This document shows positions 772 through 41,762 of a DNA stretch of 64,000 bases, in pieces. Source of the stretch: Hyalangium minutum (lineage in GTDB: Bacteria; Myxococcota; Myxococcia; Myxococcales; Myxococcaceae); the NCBI RefSeq assembly GCF_000737315.1, contig NZ_JMCB01000014.1:124001-188000 (forward strand), read 5' to 3'. The stretch's first letter is position 1. Every line of letters begins with the position of its first letter. Position numbers and translations under genes: made by a program. Below the pieces are notes generated by a model that made no database searches, was not told the origin of the DNA, and saw nothing but the letters and a program-made list of their open reading frames with translations.

Positions 772-783
772 CAGCGCCGGTCC

Positions 784-812
784 CCCGGGAGGAGAGCGCC
801 TCTCCTCCTGGG
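784..812 (+). terminator. Stem-loop just after clpA, probable terminator
   Basis: CCCGGGAGGAGAG-cgc-CTCTCCTCCTGGG, a 13-bp stem with one G:U pair, 12 nt after the clpA stop. There is no long U-tract. Confidence 0.5.
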
Positions 813-839
813 TACTGGCCCCCTCCAAGGGGGCCAGTA
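813..839. other. Second perfect inverted repeat (12-bp stem) directly adjacent to the first
   Basis: TACTGGCCCCCT-cca-AGGGGGCCAGTA. Confidence 0.6.
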
Positions 840-850
840 GAATCATTGGG

Positions 851-1462
851 ATGCGCTGGCCGAAGAAGTCCGCGATGGCCATTCCCGCATGTGCACTGCT
901 CCCAGCACTCCTCATGGGACTTGCCTCTGCCTGCGCGGCCAGCAGGCCGCCGAAGTTCTGGCGTGATGCTCAGAACCGGCTCGTCGTGGAGGGCCCACTC
1001 CTCGGCCCCATCGACACTTTGGAGGCCCTTGGGCTTCAACTCTGCGGCGCGCTGCACGAGCGACCCGGAGTCGCTGCAGGTAACCGGCGTGGAGGCCAGG
1101 AGTATTGCGGCGTCATCTATCAACACCCGGGGGATGAGCGCTTCTACGCGAGCCACCCCTCGACGTTGGGGCCACCCCTGGAGGCTCCAGGTGGACGGAA
1201 GCAGTGCTACGTTCCGGATGCGGTGAGCGATCCCAGCGCCCCGGACTCGCGCATCTACGCGGACTACCACAGCCACCCTTCCATCACCCGCTTCTCCCCC
1301 GAAGATCTCCAGGCCCGGCGGCAGCGCTTCTACTTCCGCGTGATGTTCAACCCCATCTGCGAAGTGTATGTGTACGACTTTCAAGCCCGGACAGTGCTTC
1401 AACTGACGGACGGGAAGCTCGTCCCCATCAAGTACGTGACGGATGACCTGCGGGGCGAATGA
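851..1462 (+). CDS. Lipoprotein with JAB/MPN (JAMM)-like, DUF4329-like domain
   Basis: Basic N-region, hydrophobic stretch and lipobox LASA-C. EYCGVIY carries the putative catalytic Glu, and YHSHPSITRFSPED resembles the JAMM H-x-H...S-x2-D zinc motif. Confidence 0.7.
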   Translation: MRWPKKSAMAIPACALLPALLMGLASACAASRPPKFWRDAQNRLVVEGPLLGPIDTLEALGLQLCGALHERPGVAAGNRRGGQEYCGVIYQHPGDERFYASHPSTLGPPLEAPGGRKQCYVPDAVSDPSAPDSRIYADYHSHPSITRFSPEDLQARRQRFYFRVMFNPICEVYVYDFQARTVLQLTDGKLVPIKYVTDDLRGE

Positions 1463-1491
1463 TGCGGCTTGCGGCTCGTGAAGGTGACTGG

Positions 1492-1896
1492 ATGAAGAAC
1501 TTCTCTCTTGGAGTGCTCCTCCTCGCGTGCACGGGCTGCTTCCATCTCCATCGGAAGCCGGTGATTGCTCCAGAGGAGGTCGCCGCCCAGATCCAGTTTC
1601 CCGAGTGGAGCCAGGATGCGACGACGACCCTCACGGGCTCCCAGCTCAAAGCGCTCCAAATTGCACTGGACGACTTCCGGCCCATCGGCACAGCGCCATC
1701 CACGACCGGGGACGCGTACACGAACTGCCTGTTGAAGCTCGAGACCTACGATGCGTGGGTTCGCCGTGGCGAGGGAATGACCTTCATCCACTTCACTCCC
1801 AAGGAGGACGAGAGGTGCGGGCTCCAGCCCACCCTCATGGATGCCGGTGCGAGCTATGCCGTCAGCGACGACGGCGTCATCCTCAAGCGCGAATGA
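1492..1896 (+). CDS. Hypothetical lipoprotein (134 aa), partner of the JAB-like lipoprotein
   Basis: MKNFSLGVLLLACTG-C lipobox, with ATG at 1492 after AAGGTG. An alternative start at 1459 overlaps the upstream stop (ATGA). There are two further Cys in the mature part. Confidence 0.7.
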   Translation: MKNFSLGVLLLACTGCFHLHRKPVIAPEEVAAQIQFPEWSQDATTTLTGSQLKALQIALDDFRPIGTAPSTTGDAYTNCLLKLETYDAWVRRGEGMTFIHFTPKEDERCGLQPTLMDAGASYAVSDDGVILKRE

Positions 1897-18871: not shown

Positions 18872-19028
18872 GCCCACGGCCCACACATCCCGAGCCTTGC
18901 TGCGGGTTCGGTTCCCGCCGTCTCCGAGGAAGGCAGCCCGCCGCTCTAAGCCGTGCCCGCTTCCAGCAAGCAGGCGTTGATCGCCTTAGGGAAGCCGGGC
19001 TGGCTTGACTGGGACGGCATGGCCTTCT

Positions 19029-19751
19029 TCAGTCCTCTTGAACAATCCAGCGAGTCTGGCTGAACTCCGGTCCGTCTACAACACGCAGGGGGATCGACAT
19101 CTCCTCGCACGACGCCGACAACCGGTCCCACAGCAATGCAGCCACCTCGGTGCGAACAGCGAAGTGCGCGAAATCGCCGTCAGGGCCAGGGCGCATCAAC
19201 GCGAGCAATGTGTCTTTCGTGGCCCCAAAGACCTCCTCCACTCGGCTCGGGTCAAATGCCGCGTCGACAAACGAGTACTCAGGGTCTATCGGCACTCCTT
19301 CATGAGGAGTGACCAACGCGAGTTGTCCTCCCTGGAGCCAGGGGAACGCTGCATCATCGAAGAGCTGCCGTGTCACTTCGGGATCGCGGGTGCACCGAAG
19401 CGGAAACACGGGGCGTCGTATGAGCGCCTGGAATCGAGCCGGTGCCAGCACCCGTGCAGAGCCCCCTGGCACGGCACTCCACGGCGTGCCCGGAGCAAGA
19501 TCCACCGTGGAGTCCAGAAACGTCACTCGGCCCGCGCGGCACAAAGTGGTAGCGAGAATTCGTTGGACGTCTCCGGGCACGGCAGCGTCAACGCTGTCGT
19601 GGCTCATGACCCATCCCAAGATCGCCTTTTCCAGAGAGGGCCTACGGCCAGCACCGGATCCGGTAAGAGATGACGGGAGTATGTGCGTCAGGATCAACGC
19701 CACGACATGCGGCACCCGTTGTCTGGTGTTGGTTTGGTGGCCACCTGTCAT
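19029..19751 (-). CDS. Hypothetical protein, putative immunity/partner of the upstream glycine-zipper protein
   Basis: 240-codon ORF whose start overlaps the upstream stop (ATGA at 19748-19751). Globular-looking, e.g. FDDAAFPWLQGGQLAL and LMRPGPDGDFA. Confidence 0.6.
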   Translation of the reverse strand: MTGGHQTNTRQRVPHVVALILTHILPSSLTGSGAGRRPSLEKAILGWVMSHDSVDAAVPGDVQRILATTLCRAGRVTFLDSTVDLAPGTPWSAVPGGSARVLAPARFQALIRRPVFPLRCTRDPEVTRQLFDDAAFPWLQGGQLALVTPHEGVPIDPEYSFVDAAFDPSRVEEVFGATKDTLLALMRPGPDGDFAHFAVRTEVAALLWDRLSASCEEMSIPLRVVDGPEFSQTRWIVQED

Positions 19752-34681: not shown

Positions 34682-34835
34682 TGATGGCCCTTCCGAAGGG
34701 GCAGCAGCGGCGCCCGGCCTGGAGGCCTCCGTGGTCCCTGGCTTGCAGCCCGTCTGCGCGGAAAGCCCCCTAACGCATCACGACTTCCTCACCACGCCCC
34801 GCGAGCCCCCCATCCCAGCGCGGGGAGATACACCT

Positions 34836-37800
34836 ATGACGAATGTATCCTGGAAGCACATCCCCCGCAGTGCTCTGCTGGCTGTCGCCCTGTGCGCACT
34901 TCCAGTGCAGGCCGGGCCCGACAACGTAGGACTGGGCACCGGCCGTGATGGCGAGCTCACGGTGACCGCGCTGAACACCGTCATCAACAGCTACGCCCAG
35001 GTCACCGCGCCGCTGGCGCCGGGGGACACGACCCTCACGGTGTCGTCCTCCACGGGCTTCACCGCGAGCAAGCTGGTGCTGGTGCATCAGACGACCGGCA
35101 TCGTGCCCACGCCGCCCACGGGAGGCACGGGCCCGATCGATCTCACCAACGACCCGGTGGGCCGGTGGGAGTTCGCGCGGCTGAGCGGCGTCACGGGGAC
35201 CACGCTCACCCTGACCGCGCCGCTGCTCTACTCGTACGCGGCCAGCGTCACCCAGGTCATCTCGGTGCCGGAGTACACCCACCTCACGGTGGACGCGGCC
35301 GGCAGCCTCACCGCACAGGCCTGGAACGGCACCACGGGCGGCGTCCTCATCTTCCTGGCCGCAGGCACCGTGCAACTGGAGGGTGAGCTCAACGTAGACG
35401 GCAAGGGATTGCGGGGGGGCCTGTACGTCCAGGATACCCTCACCACCCGTACCGGCTGCTCGGGAGTGGATGAGGCGGCCCTGGGCGGTGCGCAGAAGGG
35501 CGAGGGCCTCGCCGTCACGCGGTATGGGACCGGGAATACGGGGCGTGGCCATGTGGCCAACGGCGGCGGCGGCGGTGTGTGCGCGCGCGCGGGCGGTGGC
35601 GGCGGTGGCAACGGCGGCGCGGGCGGCGTGGGCGGCAACACGGACTCCTCGCTGGATCCCATGACGGGCCGGCCCGTGGGTGGCACGGGCGGTGTGGCTT
35701 TGACGTACCCCTCGGTCAGCCGCCTGACGCTCGGCGGTGGGGGCGGCGCGGGCCATGGCACCACGACGGGCACCCGCAGAGGCGGCGCGGGTGGCGGCAT
35801 CATCTTCGTCCGTGCCGACGCGCTCCAGGGCGACGGCAGCATCAACGCGAGCGGCGCTCAGGGTGACACCGTCACGGGGCTCAGCGCGGCCCATGGCGGT
35901 GGCGCGGGCGGCACCGTCTACCTGCGACTCAGGACGAGCGCCGACTGTGCGGCGCTGGTGCAGGGCGGTTCGGGTGGCAACACGAACGCCTCCATGCGCT
36001 TCGTGGGTCCTGGCGGTGGTGGCGGCGGTGGCCGTGCGCTGCTCCAGGCCGTCTCGGGCTCCTGTACGATTGATACTGCAGGAGGGAACCCGGGTCAGAC
36101 GGCCACGCTTCCTCCAAGCGGAGACTGGGGCTACGGCGCGCAGGGCGGCGCCAACGGCGTCTTCGTCCAGCTGCCGGAAGGGTTCCCGGTGCTCGCGGCG
36201 CCTGTGGTGGTGACGCCCGCCAACGGCTCCTCGACCCATGACACGACGCCTACCTACTCGGGCACGCTCCCCCCCCCGATCCCCGCGGGGACAACGGTGT
36301 CCGTGATTGTGGACGGGGGAGTGGTGGGCACGGCAACGCCGGATGCCGCTGGCAACTGGTCCTTCACCCCCACGACGCCGCTGGCGCCCGGCTCGCATAC
36401 GGCGAACGCCTTGGCCATCAACCTGGCCGAGGCGGTGGAGAGCATTCCAAGCCCCCCACACACGTTCACGGTGGCCACCACGCCACCCGTGGCCCCTGTG
36501 GTGAACACCCCAGCCAATGGATCGCGCACCAATGACAACACGCCAACCTACACGGGTACGGCGGAGCTGGGCAGCACGGTGACGGTCATTGTGAACAGCT
36601 CACCGATGGGTACTACCCCGGCGGACGCGGCGGGCAACTGGGTGTTCACGCCTACCCCGCCCCTGGCGGAGGGCTCGCATACGGTGAGCGCCACGGCGAC
36701 GGACGCGGCGGGCAACGTCAGCCCCATGTCCAACACCAACGCCTTCACGATCGACATCACCACGCCCGAGGCGCCAGTGGTGGTGACGCCGGCCAACGGC
36801 TCACGGACCGAGGACAGCACGCCGACGTATGCGGGTACAGCGGAGCCGGGCAGCACCGTCATCATCATCGTGGACGGCCCCCCAGTGGGCATCGCCACGG
36901 CGGACGTGGCGGGCAACTGGGCGTTCACGCCCACCCCACCCCTGGCGGAGGGCTCGCACACGGTGAAAGCCACGGCGACGGATGCGGCGGGCAACGTCAG
37001 CCCCGTGTCCAACACCAACACCTTCATGGTGGACGCCACGCCTCCGACGGTGGTGGTGACGACGCCAGCCGAGGGCTCGATCACCCACGACAACACGCCG
37101 ACCTACAGCGGCACGGTAGAGGCGGGCAGCACCGTCACCCTCAGCATGGACGGCACGGTGGTGGGCACTGCGACGGTGACGGGCACGACGTGGACATTCA
37201 CGCAGACCCCTCCGCTGCCGGATGGCCCGCACACGGTGACGGCCTCGGCGACGAATGCGGCGGGCACTGCCACCGACAGCACCACCTTCACAGTCGACAC
37301 CGCGAGCCCGGCCGTGGCGGTGACGGCACCCGCCGAGGGCTCCTCGACCCACGACACCACGCCGACCTACAGCGGCCTGGTATCGGACAATGGACCGGGC
37401 CCGTACATGGTGCTCGTCACGGTGGACGGAACCCCGCTCGGCAACGCGGCGGTGACGGACGGTACCTGGACCTTCGACCCGGCCGTTCCGCTGGCCGATG
37501 GGCCGCACACGGTGACGGCCACGGCCACGGACCTGGCGGGCAACACCGCCGCCGACAGCAACATCTTCACTGTGGACACCTTTGCTCCCGCAGTCTCGGT
37601 GACGACGCCGGCCGACGGCTCGACGACCCATGACTCCACGCCGCTCTACGCCGGTACGGTGGAGGCGGGCGCCACGGTGGTCATCTCCGTGGATGGCACG
37701 GAGGCAGGCCCTGCGCTGGTGACGGACACTGCGTGGACGTTCACGCAGCTCACGGCCCTGTCCGAGGGCTCTCACACGGTGACGGCCACGGCCACCGACC

Positions 37801-40800
37801 CGGGCGGCAACACTGCCACCGACAGCAACAGCTTCACGGTGGACCTGACGCCTCCGACGGTGACGGTGACGACTCCAGGCGAGGGTTCGGGAACCAACGA
37901 CCCCACTCTGGTCTACAGCGGCACGGTGGAGGCGGGCGCCGCGGTGATCATCTCCGTAGACGGCACGGTGGTGGGCGATGCCACGGTGATGGGCACCCGT
38001 TGGACGTTCACCCCATCGACACCGCTGTCAGAGGGTTCGCACACGGTGACCGCCCTGGCCATGGATGCTGCAGGCAACACTGCCAGCGATAGCAATGACT
38101 TCACCGTGGACCTGACCGCTCCGGCAGCGGCGATGGTGGGCATGCCGGCCAATGGCTCGACCATCACCGACTCCACATTGACCTTCAGCGGCATGGCGGA
38201 GCCTGGCAGCACCCTCACTCTCATTGTGGACGGTACGGTCGTGACTACCTCCTCGGTGGAGCCCAGCGGCAGTTGGAGCTTCACGCCCCTCATCGACCTG
38301 TCGAACGGCTCGCACACGGTGACAACCACGGTCACGGATGCCGCAGGCAACACCAGCCCCCACTCCGACACCACCACCTTCATCGTCGAGTTGAATCAGG
38401 CCACCGGGGGCTGGCGCGCCATCGGGACTCTGCTCACCGCCCGCACGGGCCACAAGGCGACGGTGCTGCCCTCCGGCAAGGTGCTGGTCATCGGCGGCGA
38501 GGGCCTCCGCAGCGATGGCACCCGCGGCCCGCTGGCCAGCACCGAGGTGTACGATCCGGCCACGGGGACTTGGAGCCCCACAGGCGCACTGACCACAGCT
38601 CGCCAGAACCACCTGGTGACGACGCTGCTCTCGGGTCAGGTGCTCGTCACCGGCGGCGAAGGCATCCGCAGCGATGGCTCCCGCGGTCCGCTGGCCAGCA
38701 CCGAGGTGTACGATCCGGCCACGGGGATTTGGAGCCCCACAGGCGCTCTGACCACGGCCCGCCAGAACCACTCCGCGGTGCTATTGCCCTCGGGTCAGGT
38801 ACTCGTCACCGGCGGCGAAGGCATCGACAGCGAGGGCACCCTCGGCCCGCTGGCCAGCACCGAGGTGTACGATCCGGCCACGGGGACCTGGAGCCCCACA
38901 GGCGCCCTGACCACGGCTCGCCAGAGCCACTCGGCGACGGTGCTGTTCTCGGGTCAGGTACTCGTCACCGGCGGCGAAGGCATCGACAGCGAGGGCACCC
39001 TCGGCCCGCTGGCCAGCACCGAGGTGTACGATCCGGCCACGAAGACCTGGAGCTCCACAGGCGCTCTGGCCACGGCCCGCAGGAACCACTCGGCGACGAT
39101 GCTGCTCTCGGGCGAGGTGCTCGTCGCCGGCGGCGAGGGCCTCCGCAGCAATGGCACCCGCGTCCTGCTGGCCAGCACCGAGGTGTACGATCCGGCCACG
39201 AAGACCTGGAGCCCCACAGGCGCTCTGGTCACAGCCCGCAGGAACCACTCAGCGGTGCAACTGCCCTCGGGCAGGGTGCTGATCAGCGGAAGCGAGGGCC
39301 CCAGCGGAGCCCTCACCAGCACAGAGGTGTATGCCCCGGGAACGGGGGTGTGGAGCCCGACACGTGACCTGCTCACGGCCCGCTCGGGTCATGCGGTGAC
39401 GCTGTTGCCCTCCGGCCACGTGATCATCACTGGAGGCCAGGCCTCAGGCCGTCCCCTGGGCAGCGTGGAGGTGTACAAGACGGTGGGGGCTTCCTCTCCG
39501 ACGGCGCCGCTGACCGAGGCCCGCTCGGGTTTCTCGACGGTGCTGCTGCCCAACGGGCAGGTGCTGGTGGTGGGAGGCTCAGACTCCGACGGCCGTCCCC
39601 TGGCCAGCGCACGGCTCTACAACCCTTTCACCGGGCAGTGGAGCGAAGCAGCGAACATGGGCATGCCCCGTGCCTCCGCCACGGCCACGCTCTTGCGCAC
39701 CGGCCAGGTCTTGGTCACCGGAGGCAGAGCCGTGGCCCACCGTGGACTGCAAGGCCCCAGCGCGGATGGCGGAGAGGTCCTCTCCACCGCCGAGCTGTTC
39801 GACCCGGTCACGAACACCTGGAGGTCCACCGGCTCGCTCCAAGAGGCCCGCTACGCCCACTCGGCGATCCTGTTGTCCACAGGGAACGTTCTGGTGACAG
39901 GAGGCCTGGATGCCAATGACACCCTCTGCACGACCGCCGAGGTATACGACGTGGCGGCGGGAGCCTGGAGCAAGACGGACTCGATGAACTTCCCTCGCCG
40001 GCAGCACATGGTGGCTCAACTGCCCACGGGCGAGGTGCTGGCCGCCGGCGGCCGGGACTCGCATGACATCCCTCTCGCCAGCGCCGAGGTGTATCACCCG
40101 GTGCAGAAGACCTGGACGAACACGGCTTCCATGAGCACGGCTCGCGCCACCTCGACGGCGGCGCTCTTGCCCACGGGCCAAGTGCTGGTGGTCGGAGGTG
40201 CCAACGACAGCGGTACGCTCTCCACCGCCGAGGTCTACGACCCCACGGGAAGAAAGTGGATTCGCGCATCCTCTCTGAATGCGCCTCGCAAATCCCACAC
40301 CGCGCTGCTGCTGCCCACGGGCCGGGTGCTGATCCTGGGCGGCTCGGATGACCGCCATTTCCTGGACGACGTGGAGGTGTATGACACGAAGCAGAACACG
40401 TGGGAGACCTTGAGCCGACTGGTCGACGCTCGCGAGAACTCCATGACCCTGTTGCTGCCCTCGGGCAAGGTGCTGGTGCTTGGAGGCCAGAATGCCATGG
40501 GCCCTCTGGCGAACTCGGAGTTGTATGACGAGTTCGGGGCTCCTGACTCACGGCGCCCTGTGGTCGAGCAGCCCTCCCCCCAGAAGCCCGATGCCCACTT
40601 CAGAGTGAAGGGCCAGGGCTTCACGGATCCTACCGGAGACAGCTCGAGGGTCCGCATGCAGCTTGCCCCCCTGGGAGCGCTGCGAGACGTGTCCGCGACA
40701 GGATTCTCGGACACTTCCGTGCAAGTCACCCTGCCTGGCGTACCGGAGGGCTTTCACCTGCTCTTCGTGATGGTCCATGACGTTGCCGGGGGGCAGGTCT

Positions 40801-41762
40801 TGCCGGTGGATGCAACGCCGCCGGCAGCGCCCTCGGTGAAAGGCTGGACCCACGGTGCCCAGCCTCAGCTCTCGGGCACCGCGGAGCCGTACAGCACGGT
40901 TCAGGTGTCTCTGAACGGCAGCCCTCAGGAGGGCTCGGCGGAGGCGAATGCCTCAGGAGCCTGGAGTCTGTCACTGACGACCCTGCTGGTGGATGGGAGC
41001 TACCAGGTCTCGGCGACTGCGCTGGATGCCGCGGGCAACCTCAGCCAGCCTTCCGTGCCGATCACCTTGATCGTGGACACGGAGGCACCGCCACCACCCG
41101 AGGTGAGCTCCCCGGGCGCACTCATCAAGAACCCCAAGCCTACCCTGGGTGGCACTGCGGAGGCCCATAGTACGGTGACGGTGTCGCTGGATGGGCACCT
41201 GCTCGGCAGGGCCATGACGGACTCGGAGGAACGCTGGAGCTTGCCTCTGCAAACGGTGCTGGAGGACGGAGTGCACACTGTCTCCGCGACTGCCACGGAT
41301 CCGCATGAGAACACGAGCCGGGACTCCGCGAAGGTCACCTTCACCGTGGACACCCAAGCTCCTGCCGCGCCCGAGGTGCTGACGCCGCAAGAGGGAACCA
41401 CGATGTCCTCCCGAACGGTCACCGCCAGCGGAACAGCGGAGGCGGACAGCACCGTGACGGTGTCCGTGGAGGGAGCGGAGAAGGGCACGGCCAAGGCCCA
41501 CCCCAGCACGGGGGCCTGGAGCCTCACCTTCGAGTTGGGGCCTGAAAACGGGGGACGAACCCTCGTGGTGACCGCCACGGATGCGGCGCTCAATGTCAGC
41601 CCTCCCGCGAAACGCACGTTCGCCGTGGATACGGGCGGTGGCTGCTCGGGCTGTGCATCAAGCCCCAGAGAGCCTTCGCTGGTTCTGCTGGGCCTGGCCG
41701 CACTGTGGCGCCTGCTCTCCCGCCGCCGCTCCACCCGAGCGTGCGCATCAAGGCCTCCCTGA
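34836..41762 (+). CDS. Giant cell-surface protein (2308 aa): AgmC-like Gly-rich N-domain, 8 bacterial Ig-like domains, 14 Kelch repeats, 3 more Ig-like domains, MYXO-CTERM-like anchor
   Basis: Signal peptide. Gly-rich N-domain (GHVANGGGGG...GGGGGGNGGAGG). Repeated P-x-V-x-TP-x-xGS-x-T-x-D-x-TP-TYSG units. Kelch AR-x2-H...LLPSGQVLVTGG...EVYDP units. C-terminal GGGCSGC...LVLLGLAALWRLLSRRR. ATG at 34836. Confidence 0.88.
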   Translation: MTNVSWKHIPRSALLAVALCALPVQAGPDNVGLGTGRDGELTVTALNTVINSYAQVTAPLAPGDTTLTVSSSTGFTASKLVLVHQTTGIVPTPPTGGTGPIDLTNDPVGRWEFARLSGVTGTTLTLTAPLLYSYAASVTQVISVPEYTHLTVDAAGSLTAQAWNGTTGGVLIFLAAGTVQLEGELNVDGKGLRGGLYVQDTLTTRTGCSGVDEAALGGAQKGEGLAVTRYGTGNTGRGHVANGGGGGVCARAGGGGGGNGGAGGVGGNTDSSLDPMTGRPVGGTGGVALTYPSVSRLTLGGGGGAGHGTTTGTRRGGAGGGIIFVRADALQGDGSINASGAQGDTVTGLSAAHGGGAGGTVYLRLRTSADCAALVQGGSGGNTNASMRFVGPGGGGGGGRALLQAVSGSCTIDTAGGNPGQTATLPPSGDWGYGAQGGANGVFVQLPEGFPVLAAPVVVTPANGSSTHDTTPTYSGTLPPPIPAGTTVSVIVDGGVVGTATPDAAGNWSFTPTTPLAPGSHTANALAINLAEAVESIPSPPHTFTVATTPPVAPVVNTPANGSRTNDNTPTYTGTAELGSTVTVIVNSSPMGTTPADAAGNWVFTPTPPLAEGSHTVSATATDAAGNVSPMSNTNAFTIDITTPEAPVVVTPANGSRTEDSTPTYAGTAEPGSTVIIIVDGPPVGIATADVAGNWAFTPTPPLAEGSHTVKATATDAAGNVSPVSNTNTFMVDATPPTVVVTTPAEGSITHDNTPTYSGTVEAGSTVTLSMDGTVVGTATVTGTTWTFTQTPPLPDGPHTVTASATNAAGTATDSTTFTVDTASPAVAVTAPAEGSSTHDTTPTYSGLVSDNGPGPYMVLVTVDGTPLGNAAVTDGTWTFDPAVPLADGPHTVTATATDLAGNTAADSNIFTVDTFAPAVSVTTPADGSTTHDSTPLYAGTVEAGATVVISVDGTEAGPALVTDTAWTFTQLTALSEGSHTVTATATDPGGNTATDSNSFTVDLTPPTVTVTTPGEGSGTNDPTLVYSGTVEAGAAVIISVDGTVVGDATVMGTRWTFTPSTPLSEGSHTVTALAMDAAGNTASDSNDFTVDLTAPAAAMVGMPANGSTITDSTLTFSGMAEPGSTLTLIVDGTVVTTSSVEPSGSWSFTPLIDLSNGSHTVTTTVTDAAGNTSPHSDTTTFIVELNQATGGWRAIGTLLTARTGHKATVLPSGKVLVIGGEGLRSDGTRGPLASTEVYDPATGTWSPTGALTTARQNHLVTTLLSGQVLVTGGEGIRSDGSRGPLASTEVYDPATGIWSPTGALTTARQNHSAVLLPSGQVLVTGGEGIDSEGTLGPLASTEVYDPATGTWSPTGALTTARQSHSATVLFSGQVLVTGGEGIDSEGTLGPLASTEVYDPATKTWSSTGALATARRNHSATMLLSGEVLVAGGEGLRSNGTRVLLASTEVYDPATKTWSPTGALVTARRNHSAVQLPSGRVLISGSEGPSGALTSTEVYAPGTGVWSPTRDLLTARSGHAVTLLPSGHVIITGGQASGRPLGSVEVYKTVGASSPTAPLTEARSGFSTVLLPNGQVLVVGGSDSDGRPLASARLYNPFTGQWSEAANMGMPRASATATLLRTGQVLVTGGRAVAHRGLQGPSADGGEVLSTAELFDPVTNTWRSTGSLQEARYAHSAILLSTGNVLVTGGLDANDTLCTTAEVYDVAAGAWSKTDSMNFPRRQHMVAQLPTGEVLAAGGRDSHDIPLASAEVYHPVQKTWTNTASMSTARATSTAALLPTGQVLVVGGANDSGTLSTAEVYDPTGRKWIRASSLNAPRKSHTALLLPTGRVLILGGSDDRHFLDDVEVYDTKQNTWETLSRLVDARENSMTLLLPSGKVLVLGGQNAMGPLANSELYDEFGAPDSRRPVVEQPSPQKPDAHFRVKGQGFTDPTGDSSRVRMQLAPLGALRDVSATGFSDTSVQVTLPGVPEGFHLLFVMVHDVAGGQVLPVDATPPAAPSVKGWTHGAQPQLSGTAEPYSTVQVSLNGSPQEGSAEANASGAWSLSLTTLLVDGSYQVSATALDAAGNLSQPSVPITLIVDTEAPPPPEVSSPGALIKNPKPTLGGTAEAHSTVTVSLDGHLLGRAMTDSEERWSLPLQTVLEDGVHTVSATATDPHENTSRDSAKVTFTVDTQAPAAPEVLTPQEGTTMSSRTVTASGTAEADSTVTVSVEGAEKGTAKAHPSTGAWSLTFELGPENGGRTLVVTATDAALNVSPPAKRTFAVDTGGGCSGCASSPREPSLVLLGLAALWRLLSRRRSTRACASRPP
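36192..38390 (+). repeat. Eight intragenic Ig-like domain repeats (about 87-93 aa each)
   Basis: Eight units counted in the translation. Units 2 and 3 are near-identical in DNA with a 279-bp offset (GCGGGCAACTGG at 36630 and 36909). Confidence 0.85.
38480..39340 (+). repeat. 159-bp intragenic tandem repeat (53-aa Kelch blades)
   Basis: ACCGAGGTGTACGATCCGGCCACG recurs at 38541, 38700, 38859, 39018 and 39177 (exact 159-bp period), with a diverged shorter copy at 39321. Confidence 0.92.

Follow-up and report, generated by a model that had tools for sequence, protein, structure and literature searches.

A putative exported JAB/MPN+ lipoprotein and its lipoprotein partner form a conserved gene pair in myxobacteria

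Here we describe two adjacent genes, gene 1 and gene 2, at positions 851 to 1,896 of a 64,000-nucleotide stretch of Hyalangium minutum DNA (contig NZ_JMCB01000014.1, positions 124,001 to 188,000; the whole stretch is called the window below). We found that gene 1 encodes a divergent JAB/MPN+ protein with a complete catalytic set, and the comparison of homologous loci indicates that gene 1 and gene 2 form an obligate, ancient and co-diversifying module. The reading that we favour, with a confidence that falls somewhat short of an even chance, is that gene 1 is a lipid-anchored periplasmic JAMM hydrolase, that gene 2 is its cognate lipoprotein inhibitor or self-protection partner, and that the bond it cuts is an amide or isopeptide linkage in the envelope. 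The first-pass annotation of this DNA had described two adjacent lipobox genes between clpA and a che operon, the first JAB/MPN-like and the second a co-located lipoprotein partner. The open reading frames (ORFs), the alignments and the flanks confirm this arrangement, and the assignment of both proteins is supported. The features of the pair are as follows.

851-1462, plus strand: gene 1, 203 amino acids (aa), from the ORF call
851-934, plus strand: signal peptide and lipobox of gene 1, with Cys28 at 932-934
1100-1102 (E84), 1268-1270 (H140), 1274-1276 (H142), 1295-1297 (S149) and 1304-1306 (D152), plus strand: putative catalytic residues of gene 1
1492-1896 (134 aa) or 1459-1896 (145 aa), plus strand: gene 2, from the ORF call and the alignments
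1537-1539 (lipobox), 1726-1728 and 1816-1818 (further cysteines), plus strand: Cys codons of gene 2, all invariant among 52 orthologues

The N-terminus of gene 1, MRWPKKSAMAIPACALLPALLMGLASAC, has a charged n-region, a hydrophobic core and a small residue before Cys28, and this cysteine is invariant among 32 gene 1 orthologues. The full JAMM-like set that had been noted in gene 1 is indeed present: E84 (in QEYCG), H140-S-H142 and S149-P-E-D152 are invariant or nearly so among the 32 orthologues. In addition, E84, H140, H142 and S149 are kept in at least 90% of the wider superfamily in the alignment, and the JAMM residues are conserved over relatives of about 25-95% identity. Furthermore, gene 1 contains four other invariant cysteines, at positions 65, 86, 119 and 170. 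The single relative without C65 (P0126) is also without C170, and this joint loss is as expected for a disulfide pair.

The structural comparison agrees with the motif. The AlphaFold2 (AF2) model of gene 1, built from the 32 orthologues, had a predicted local distance difference test score (pLDDT) of 78 and a predicted template modelling score (pTM) of 0.72. In a Foldseek search of the PDB, the top matches were all JAB/MPN proteins (best E = 1.1e-3), including AF2198, PfJAMM1, BRCC36, Prp8-Jab1, an Rpn11 homologue and a bacterial ubiquitin-like (Ubl) deubiquitinase. In BFVD, the top matches were phage 'JAB domain-containing' proteins (best E = 3.1e-4). The MPN fold suggested for gene 1 was thus found in both databases, and the matches of the model, modest in significance, are entirely consistent in pointing to JAB/MPN. 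Existing names go the same way: the Myxococcus xanthus orthologue is a 'JAB domain-containing protein' in UniProt, a JGI fragment carries the name 'proteasome lid subunit RPN8/RPN11', and among the Corallococcus orthologues one is called 'DUF4329 domain-containing protein'. At the sequence level, gene 1 had no match in NCBIfam, PADLOC or PHROGs, and none among PDB sequences in either a single-sequence or a profile search.

Gene 2 is conserved as well. Its 52 orthologues share the motifs IxFP, LxALxxAxxDFxP and DxGxxYAxxxxGxILxR, and its AF2 model (pLDDT 80) consists of three helices followed by four strands, an alpha+beta arrangement. We found no fold or sequence relative for this family. In Foldseek against the PDB nothing fell below E = 0.05, the best match being a 47-column piece of LolA at E = 0.05. 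Single-sequence and profile searches of PDB sequences gave no match, nor did Pfam, NCBIfam and PADLOC, and PHROGs gave chance-level matches only. When 14 diverse family members were compared with Pfam, including the Imm families, at E up to 10, there was again no match. UniProt names the orthologues 'Lipoprotein', and the M. xanthus DK1622 protein is ABF90766.1/Q1DF56. Its locus tag, about MXAN_0433, is a guess extrapolated from the accession, and a literature search of MXAN_0431-0436 found nothing. In addition, residues +1 to +7 of the mature protein (1537-1557) read C-x-H-x-H-R-K, a pattern conserved among the orthologues, and its HxH motif is absent from the partners of other subfamilies.

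The two genes occur together. In every one of the 13 genome loci recovered, which belong to Hyalangium, Archangium, Vitiosangium, Corallococcus and M. xanthus, gene 2 lies directly after gene 1, and the same order is found in Stigmatella sp. ncwal1 (L017) and in three metagenome contigs (L020-L022). The apparent absence of gene 1 from the Stigmatella genome was rejected as a gene-calling artefact: the call is truncated, and gene 1 is intact at the DNA level. Homologues of gene 1 therefore carry the partner gene essentially always. Of the neighbourhood described for the window, the order of the pair holds everywhere that the pair is intact, whereas the clpA and che flanks do not extend beyond the closest clade. 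The flanks differ between the genus groups (the window with Hyalangium, Archangium with Vitiosangium, Corallococcus, M. xanthus and Stigmatella), making at least four unrelated contexts, and are constant within each group; clpA is upstream only in the clade of the window. A functional link based on synteny of clpA, the pair and che was considered and rejected, since this synteny occurs only in the closest clade (L020-L022, and on the upstream side only in Hyalangium L001).

To see how far the family extends, an exhaustive profile search of 1.84 billion representative proteins was made, and it returned only 51 clusters. The gene 1 homologues in this set are mostly 45-352 aa long, and none is Rhs-sized. 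In a profile search that gave names, all named relatives come from Myxococcaceae or Archangiaceae; they have about 200-260 aa, and several are annotated 'Lipoprotein'. They fall into paralogous subfamilies with 25-34% identity to gene 1, and there are at least two modules in M. stipitatus strain NVS55 and at least three in one Hyalangium metagenome-assembled genome (MAG). From this distribution, the pair appears to be specific to myxobacteria, with several diverged copies per genome.

The other subfamilies show the same pairing. Our sample comprised seven loci from four subfamilies: C. fuscus (L014), M. stipitatus (L015), Hyalangium (L016), GCA_003612055.1 (L023), a metagenome (L024) and two IMG/VR sequences (L026 and L027). 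In all seven, the next gene downstream encodes a lipoprotein of the gene 2 family. A gene 2 profile made from orthologues only finds the partners of L014-L016, L023 and L024 at E = 1e-9 to 1e-20, and a broader partner profile finds those of L026 and L027 at about E = 1e-39. The ATGA overlap between the two genes is present in five of the seven (L014, L015, L016, L023 and L024). The partner gene of L016 is uncalled in the annotation, L024 has two tandem partner genes, and the partners of the L014-L016 subfamily bear a long low-complexity tail after the conserved ILRR motif. The L026 and L027 modules (UViG_2619619029_000003 and UViG_2844548561_000001), whose JAB-lipoproteins are 30-33% identical to gene 1, lie in regions that IMG/VR calls viral. 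Near them are a weak TrbC/VirB2-like pilin match and an NlpC/P60 protein, so the supposed phages may instead be conjugative or integrative elements.

The two genes also decay together. In S. aurantiaca DW4/3-1, gene 1 is gone, a real loss, and gene 2 is frameshifted. In a second copy of the pair in A. violaceum, only the last 33 codons of gene 1 remain, and gene 2 is internally deleted. We saw no case of an orphan partner retained after loss of gene 1. The degraded A. violaceum copy (L019 2587-4787, CP043493) is immediately preceded by two ORFs, one of 577 aa and P-loop/NACHT-like and the other of 156 aa, for which no Pfam match is on record, and a DUF772 transposase-family gene is nearby; gene 1 seems to have been destroyed here by a defence or mobile insertion. 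In an Archangium sp. MAG (L004 3746-5811), an ApbE-like gene is separated from gene 1 by two inserted ORFs of lower GC content at third codon positions (GC3), one of 347 aa with an HNH-like motif and the other of 327 aa and HEAT/helical-repeat-like. The site beside the pair appears to accept insertions in Archangium.

On the basis of these results, we propose the following scheme. Gene 1 would be exported by the Sec route, lipidated at Cys28 and anchored in a membrane facing the periplasm; default sorting makes the inner leaflet of the outer membrane the likeliest place. The mature domain would adopt a disulfide-stabilised JAB/MPN+ fold, in which His140, His142 and Asp152 would hold zinc and Glu84 would act as general base, with Ser149 completing the site. 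Such a site would cut an amide or isopeptide bond in an envelope substrate, and the candidates are peptidoglycan stem or cross-link bonds and links between protein and peptidoglycan. Gene 2 would be made from the same transcript, possibly by coupled translation, as a lipidated, disulfide-bearing protein; as the cognate binding partner it would restrain the hydrolase, most likely as a stoichiometric inhibitor or a self-protection protein. We infer the membrane location, the zinc hydrolase activity, the physical binding, the inhibition and the nature of the substrate alike. The role of inhibitor is suggested for gene 2 by the order of enzyme and then partner with translational coupling, by the one-to-one co-diversification and joint decay, and by the published pattern of predicted secreted JAB toxins with small alpha+beta neutralisers, including the lipoprotein Imm65 (PMC3482391).

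Several observations weigh against this scheme, and they should be taken together. First, the Pfam JAB scores of gene 1 are all under the gathering score. Prok-JAB (PF14464) matched at E = 1.4e-3 with 18.9 bits against a cut-off of 25, and DUF4329 (PF14220) at E = 0.026 with 14.9 bits against 28.6. Among 25 family members, weak matches to Prok-JAB were found in 15 (best E = 1.7e-4) and to DUF4329 in 13 (best E = 1.3e-3). The DUF4329 connection made by the first-pass annotation thus stands as a weak Pfam match and falls as one above threshold. Second, the Foldseek E value of gene 1 is only about 1e-3, with template modelling (TM) scores of 0.3-0.55; for the top PDB matches, the TM score to the target is 0.45-0.56. 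Third, the canonical JAMM spacing is HxH-x7-S-x2-D, and gene 1 has HxH-x6-S-x2-D, one residue fewer. Fourth, many members have an atypical lipobox, either with Pro at -2 or Cys at -3 or with a truncated N-terminus; a strict PS51257-like pattern fits 24 of the 32 gene 1 orthologues and 30 of the 52 gene 2 orthologues. Fifth, the closest relative, P0001 in L020 (a Logan ERR11272421 contig; 93% identical, cluster of 7 sequences), carries H142D (CAC to GAC) at a predicted zinc ligand, so activity may be dispensable, or Asp may be tolerated. Sixth, the paralogous modules per genome, the tandem duplication of the partner and the module in IMG/VR elements fit an arsenal for antagonism about as well as they fit a housekeeping role. 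Finally, Zhang et al. suggested that JAB domains of the toxin type may act as nucleases and not as peptidases (PMC3482391).

This last point leads to a reading in which gene 1 is a nuclease-type or other non-peptidase JAB (RadC-like) with nucleic acid, either extracellular or inside a target cell, as its substrate. Zhang et al. (2012) argued that the toxin JAB clades are without the tunnel for Ubl tails (PMC3482391), and the gene 1 family is itself far from the Ubl-processing JABs, with Pfam matches below threshold only. However, the lipid anchor, the disulfide-type cysteines and the lipoprotein partner would imply the periplasm, where DNA should be no normal substrate. Furthermore, the top Foldseek matches are peptidase-type JAB/MPN proteins, and there is no RadC among the top 50. 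Thus, we consider a nuclease very unlikely.

The H142D change bears on another reading, that the two proteins are a non-catalytic structural pair in which the JAB fold is kept as a scaffold in the MPN- style. In addition to H142D, P0101 has no H140, P0136 has neither E84 nor H140, and the low GC3 of the pair (see below) may mean low expression. However, the JAMM set is near-invariant in the 32 orthologues and four of its residues reach at least 90% in the superfamily, which is unexpected for a pseudo-enzyme. This explanation seems to us most improbable, and we keep to a catalytic gene 1. One draft contig of 1.5 kb (A. violaceum Cb vi76, L012 376-929) has gene 1 split over two frames near residue 60-80, by a frameshift or a sequencing error.

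The pairing evidence by itself does not say what gene 2 does. Strict pairing, co-diversification and co-decay fit any obligate partnership equally well, and gene 2 might recruit the JAB hydrolase, activate it or be cut by it. Analogues are the lipoprotein partners in NlpI-MepS and LpoA/B-PBP. The conservation of gene 2 is at least equal to that of gene 1, with identities of 84% vs 70% for gene 2 and gene 1 in Hyalangium L001 and of 68% vs 56% in Corallococcus L009, and this too would suit an adaptor, an activator or a substrate. However, gene 2 has neither a ubiquitin-like beta-grasp fold nor a conserved processed C-terminal tail. In addition, no third gene travels with the pair in the orthologous and other-subfamily loci that we compared, so a linked conserved gene as a possible target is missing. 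We regard such a role as rather unlikely and prefer an inhibitor or self-protection protein.

The selection on the two genes speaks to their biological role. Measured against the closest relatives, gene 1 has a ratio of nonsynonymous to synonymous substitution rates (dN/dS) of 0.08-0.125, gene 2 one of 0.06 and clpA one of 0.09, and strong purifying selection acts on the orthologues of both genes. A single gene 1 protein recurs unchanged on 111 contigs of M. xanthus and a single gene 2 protein on 149, and the other M. xanthus variants of both proteins are inside the same 90% clusters. This monomorphism within a species is the opposite of the allelic diversity expected for kin-discrimination toxins. 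Thus, purifying selection, monomorphism and stable synteny suggest a conserved physiological or predatory role and speak against a kin-killing toxin.

The location of the two proteins can be predicted from their sorting residues. In M. xanthus lipoproteins, Lys at +2 directs to the inner membrane and Ala at +7 to the matrix, and the others go to the outer membrane (PMC3222651). No member of the gene 1 or gene 2 family has Lys at +2, and at +7 the window proteins have Pro (gene 1) and Lys (gene 2). By this rule, both lipoproteins are predicted to be in the outer membrane. Furthermore, the invariant cysteines in both mature proteins fit a periplasmic or surface action, and the general idea of a pair acting there, already put forward for this locus, agrees with them and with the JAB-lipoprotein precedent (PMC3482391).

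The same evidence bears on the possibility that the pair is an effector and its immunity protein. The JAB lipoprotein would be delivered by outer-membrane exchange, vesicles or contact and would damage the envelope, with gene 2 giving immunity. Outer-membrane lipoproteins are cargo of outer-membrane exchange and of vesicles, and the two proteins would share one compartment. The order of toxin and then immunity gene with ATGA coupling, the cognate co-diversification over five subfamilies, the several modules per genome, the tandem partners in L024 and the distant module in IMG/VR-called elements, where a TrbC-like pilin and an NlpC/P60 protein are neighbours, all count in its favour, and Tox-JAB-1 with the lipoprotein Imm65 is a precedent (PMC3482391). 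However, the purifying selection and the monomorphism within a species are opposed to it, the locus is stable and syntenic within genera, and Rhs, PAAR and escort domains are absent, as is sitB. In addition, no orphan partner is kept after loss of gene 1, and no plasmid homologue of the family was found. Moreover, if both proteins are in the outer membrane as predicted, exchange would transfer the antidote together with the toxin. The first-pass annotation had proposed an effector-immunity pair moved by outer-membrane exchange, and this was not supported by dN/dS values of 0.06-0.125 in a monomorphic, syntenic pair with no delivery domain. We therefore judge an effector-immunity pair unlikely, and a conserved hydrolase with its inhibitor remains the reading that we prefer.

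The ORF upstream of gene 1 is the C-terminus of a ClpA/B-type AAA+ protein with its stop codon at 771, and in the near-identical locus L021 the full clpA comes after clpS. Downstream, a converging operon on the minus strand encodes a methyl-accepting chemotaxis protein (MCP), CheB, CheA-RR, CheW, CheR, a CheV-like protein and CheY. No mobile-element context was present at the window locus. The greater share of A/T-ending codons that had been reported for the pair is borne out by GC3: gene 1 has 0.76 and gene 2 has 0.81, against 0.89-0.93 in the immediate neighbours and a window mean of 0.86 (standard deviation 0.07). This deficit is genuine and mild. Orthologues from other genera have a similarly reduced GC3 of 0.80-0.84; thus, the low GC3 should be an old and stable property of these genes and no mark of recent transfer. 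Recent horizontal transfer was rejected as its cause, because the orthologues from other genera share the bias and dN/dS is low.

Four further features concern the expression of the pair.

781-836, plus strand: two strong GC-rich hairpins directly 3' of the clpA stop (771), terminator- or insulator-like and without a T-run
838-843, plus strand: TAGAAT, a hexamer resembling a -10 element, with 7 nt between it and the gene 1 ATG
1459-1462, plus strand: ATGA, in which the gene 1 stop (1460-1462) overlaps the earliest in-frame ATG of the ORF for gene 2
1480-1486, plus strand: GAAGGTG, Shine-Dalgarno-like, 5 nt before ATG 1492

The RNA fold of 765-860 has a free energy of -63.2 kcal/mol (z = -5.6 vs shuffles), and the stem of the first hairpin is kept in L001, L020 and L021. 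The arrangement of TAGAAT or TAGACT, 7 nt and ATG is kept in the window, L020, L021 and Hyalangium L001. The Corallococcus loci have TAGCGT or TAGCCT, 6 nt and then ATG, and the Archangium loci have a conserved GAAAGGCAGG leader in place of this arrangement. The gene 1 ATG at 851 has no preceding Shine-Dalgarno sequence, and a scan of 600-2100 for sigma-70 promoter and intrinsic-terminator consensus found no match. The hairpins, the conserved TAGAAT 7 nt before the ATG and the missing Shine-Dalgarno sequence suggest a leaderless gene 1 mRNA, for which TAGAAT at 838-843 may be the promoter.

There are two candidate starts for gene 2 (1459 and 1492), and both yield a workable signal peptide. Gene 2 homologues mostly begin at the MK.. 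position, which is ATG 1492 here (MKNFSLGVLLLACTGC), the (G/A)AGGTG before it is kept in L020 and L021, and the spacer between gene 1 and gene 2 is 30-74 nt outside the clade of the window. The ATGATG overlap is retained in the closest relatives L017, L020 and L021. Stigmatella L017 has ATA in place of the internal Met codon, which leaves the overlapping ATG as the only possible start of gene 2 in that locus. The suggested ATGA coupling therefore holds in part: the overlap exists in the closest clade and in other subfamilies, whereas most homologues begin at the 1492 position. Translational coupling from gene 1 to gene 2 at the window locus is plausible.

We found no further family members within the 64-kb window. 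A weak match to the JAB-lipoprotein superfamily profile (E = 0.003) at 40238-40753 on the minus strand lies inside or opposite a 2343-aa ORF (34731-41762) with an unusual GC2 (GC content at second codon positions) of 0.60, and the match is probably due to chance. In addition, the window has a low-GC3 patch (0.68-0.78) at 19005-21783, which may be a foreign or accessory island. It contains an ORF at 19748-20563 on the minus strand, without Pfam match and with a long Gly-zipper-like tail at its end (VGGVVGGVVGGAGG...), and an ORF at 21184-21783 on the plus strand with a lipobox (LLAAC) at its start. This patch is a better candidate for recent acquisition than the gene pair.

If the favoured reading is right, an exported JAMM enzyme would be unusual, and it is easily tested in M. 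xanthus. The pair is a compact and tractable case, with a mature enzyme of 175 residues and a partner of 118 residues, both conserved in this model organism, and it could help to reveal the function of a periplasmic JAMM site and the way in which a lipoprotein partner regulates it. With peptidoglycan or another envelope isopeptide as substrate, it would be a new enzyme class for cell-wall biology and for myxobacterial predation or development. If the proteins are inert or of minor effect, they are a clade-specific pair of conserved hypothetical lipoproteins. A broader and speculative view, which we think unlikely to hold as a whole, is that the paralogues make up a myxobacterial arsenal on the outer membrane or on vesicles, in which latent lipid-anchored JAMM/MPN+ hydrolases, each with a cognate lipoprotein inhibitor, cut isopeptide-type envelope bonds (peptidoglycan cross-links and protein-peptidoglycan tethers) of prey or neighbours; this would be the first extracytoplasmic family of its kind.

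Databases list the gene 1 family under no other names than 'hypothetical', 'JAB domain-containing' or 'DUF4329 domain-containing', neither family has its own Pfam model, and a literature search found no experimental work on either. To our knowledge, all experimentally characterised JAB/JAMM enzymes are cytoplasmic or nuclear and act on ubiquitin-like tails. Exported JAB domains have so far been comparative-genomics predictions only (PMC3482391). Among these predictions, the present family would be a variant of the secreted Tox-JAB with a lipoprotein or NTF2 immunity protein.

In the survey of Zhang et al. (2012), Tox-JAB-2, which overlaps Pfam DUF4329 (PF14220), has the motif E, H[ST]H, S, D and is paired with Imm-NTF2-2, and secreted versions with a signal peptide only are listed for this clade, including some from delta-proteobacteria (PMC3482391). 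Gene 1 agrees with the signature in E84, H-S-H, S149 and D152, and a small alpha+beta protein is encoded immediately downstream. However, its DUF4329 score is far below threshold, it is a stand-alone lipoprotein rather than the C-terminal tip of an Rhs or another polymorphic toxin, and it is not polymorphic. In addition, gene 2 is a predicted lipoprotein with no Imm-NTF2-2 match and no significant match to the NTF2 fold.

Tox-JAB-1 with Imm65 belongs to Rhs toxins of Bacteroidetes, and Imm65 is the sole lipoprotein-like immunity protein of that survey, which implies an action at the envelope (PMC3482391). The likeness here is a JAB-type domain paired with a partner that has a signal peptide and a lipobox. 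Nevertheless, the present protein is stand-alone in Myxococcota and Tox-JAB-1 is fused to Rhs in Bacteroidetes, gene 1 has N-x5-E where Tox-JAB-1 has NxxxE, and gene 2 lacks both a Pfam Imm match and a conserved YxC motif of Imm65.

Compared with the cytoplasmic JAB/JAMM proteins (Prok-JAB PF14464, AF2198, PfJAMM1, CBASS Cap3 and the Ubl-deubiquitinases), gene 1 has the same predicted fold and catalytic residues, and these proteins are its best matches. They act on ubiquitin-like or sulfur-carrier tails, whereas gene 1 is predicted to be lipid-anchored and exported, is Cys-rich, and has one residue fewer between HxH and Ser. The pair is flanked by clpA and che genes, with no Ubl, E1/E2 or CD-NTase gene close by, and PADLOC gave no match; thus, gene 1 also differs from the CBASS Cap3-type JAB, which has such associations.

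The sitBAI cassettes of myxobacteria are reported, in the work of Vassallo and Wall, to be toxins delivered by outer-membrane exchange, with sitB upstream, a modular, polymorphic SitA lipoprotein and a cytoplasmic SitI. The present pair is similar in that the gene for a lipoprotein of myxobacteria, predicted to have an enzymatic domain, precedes a small cognate gene, and its cargo class (outer-membrane lipoprotein) fits exchange. The first-pass annotation had set it apart from sitBAI, and rightly so: there is no sitB, gene 1 is a 203-aa single domain without an escort domain and a swappable tip, and the partner is a predicted exported lipoprotein and not a cytoplasmic SitI. Furthermore, the pair is monomorphic, under purifying selection and without a mobile element.

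The closest functional analogues may be periplasmic hydrolases with a self-protection protein, such as the Tae/Tsi pairs of type VI secretion systems (T6SS) and the Bdellovibrio endopeptidase with Bd3460. The folds are unrelated, and no linkage to a secretion system was seen for the present pair. As in those systems, an envelope hydrolase would stand beside a neutraliser of the same compartment, which is the role that we propose for gene 2, and as in the Bd3460 example from a predator, the pair is conserved rather than polymorphic.

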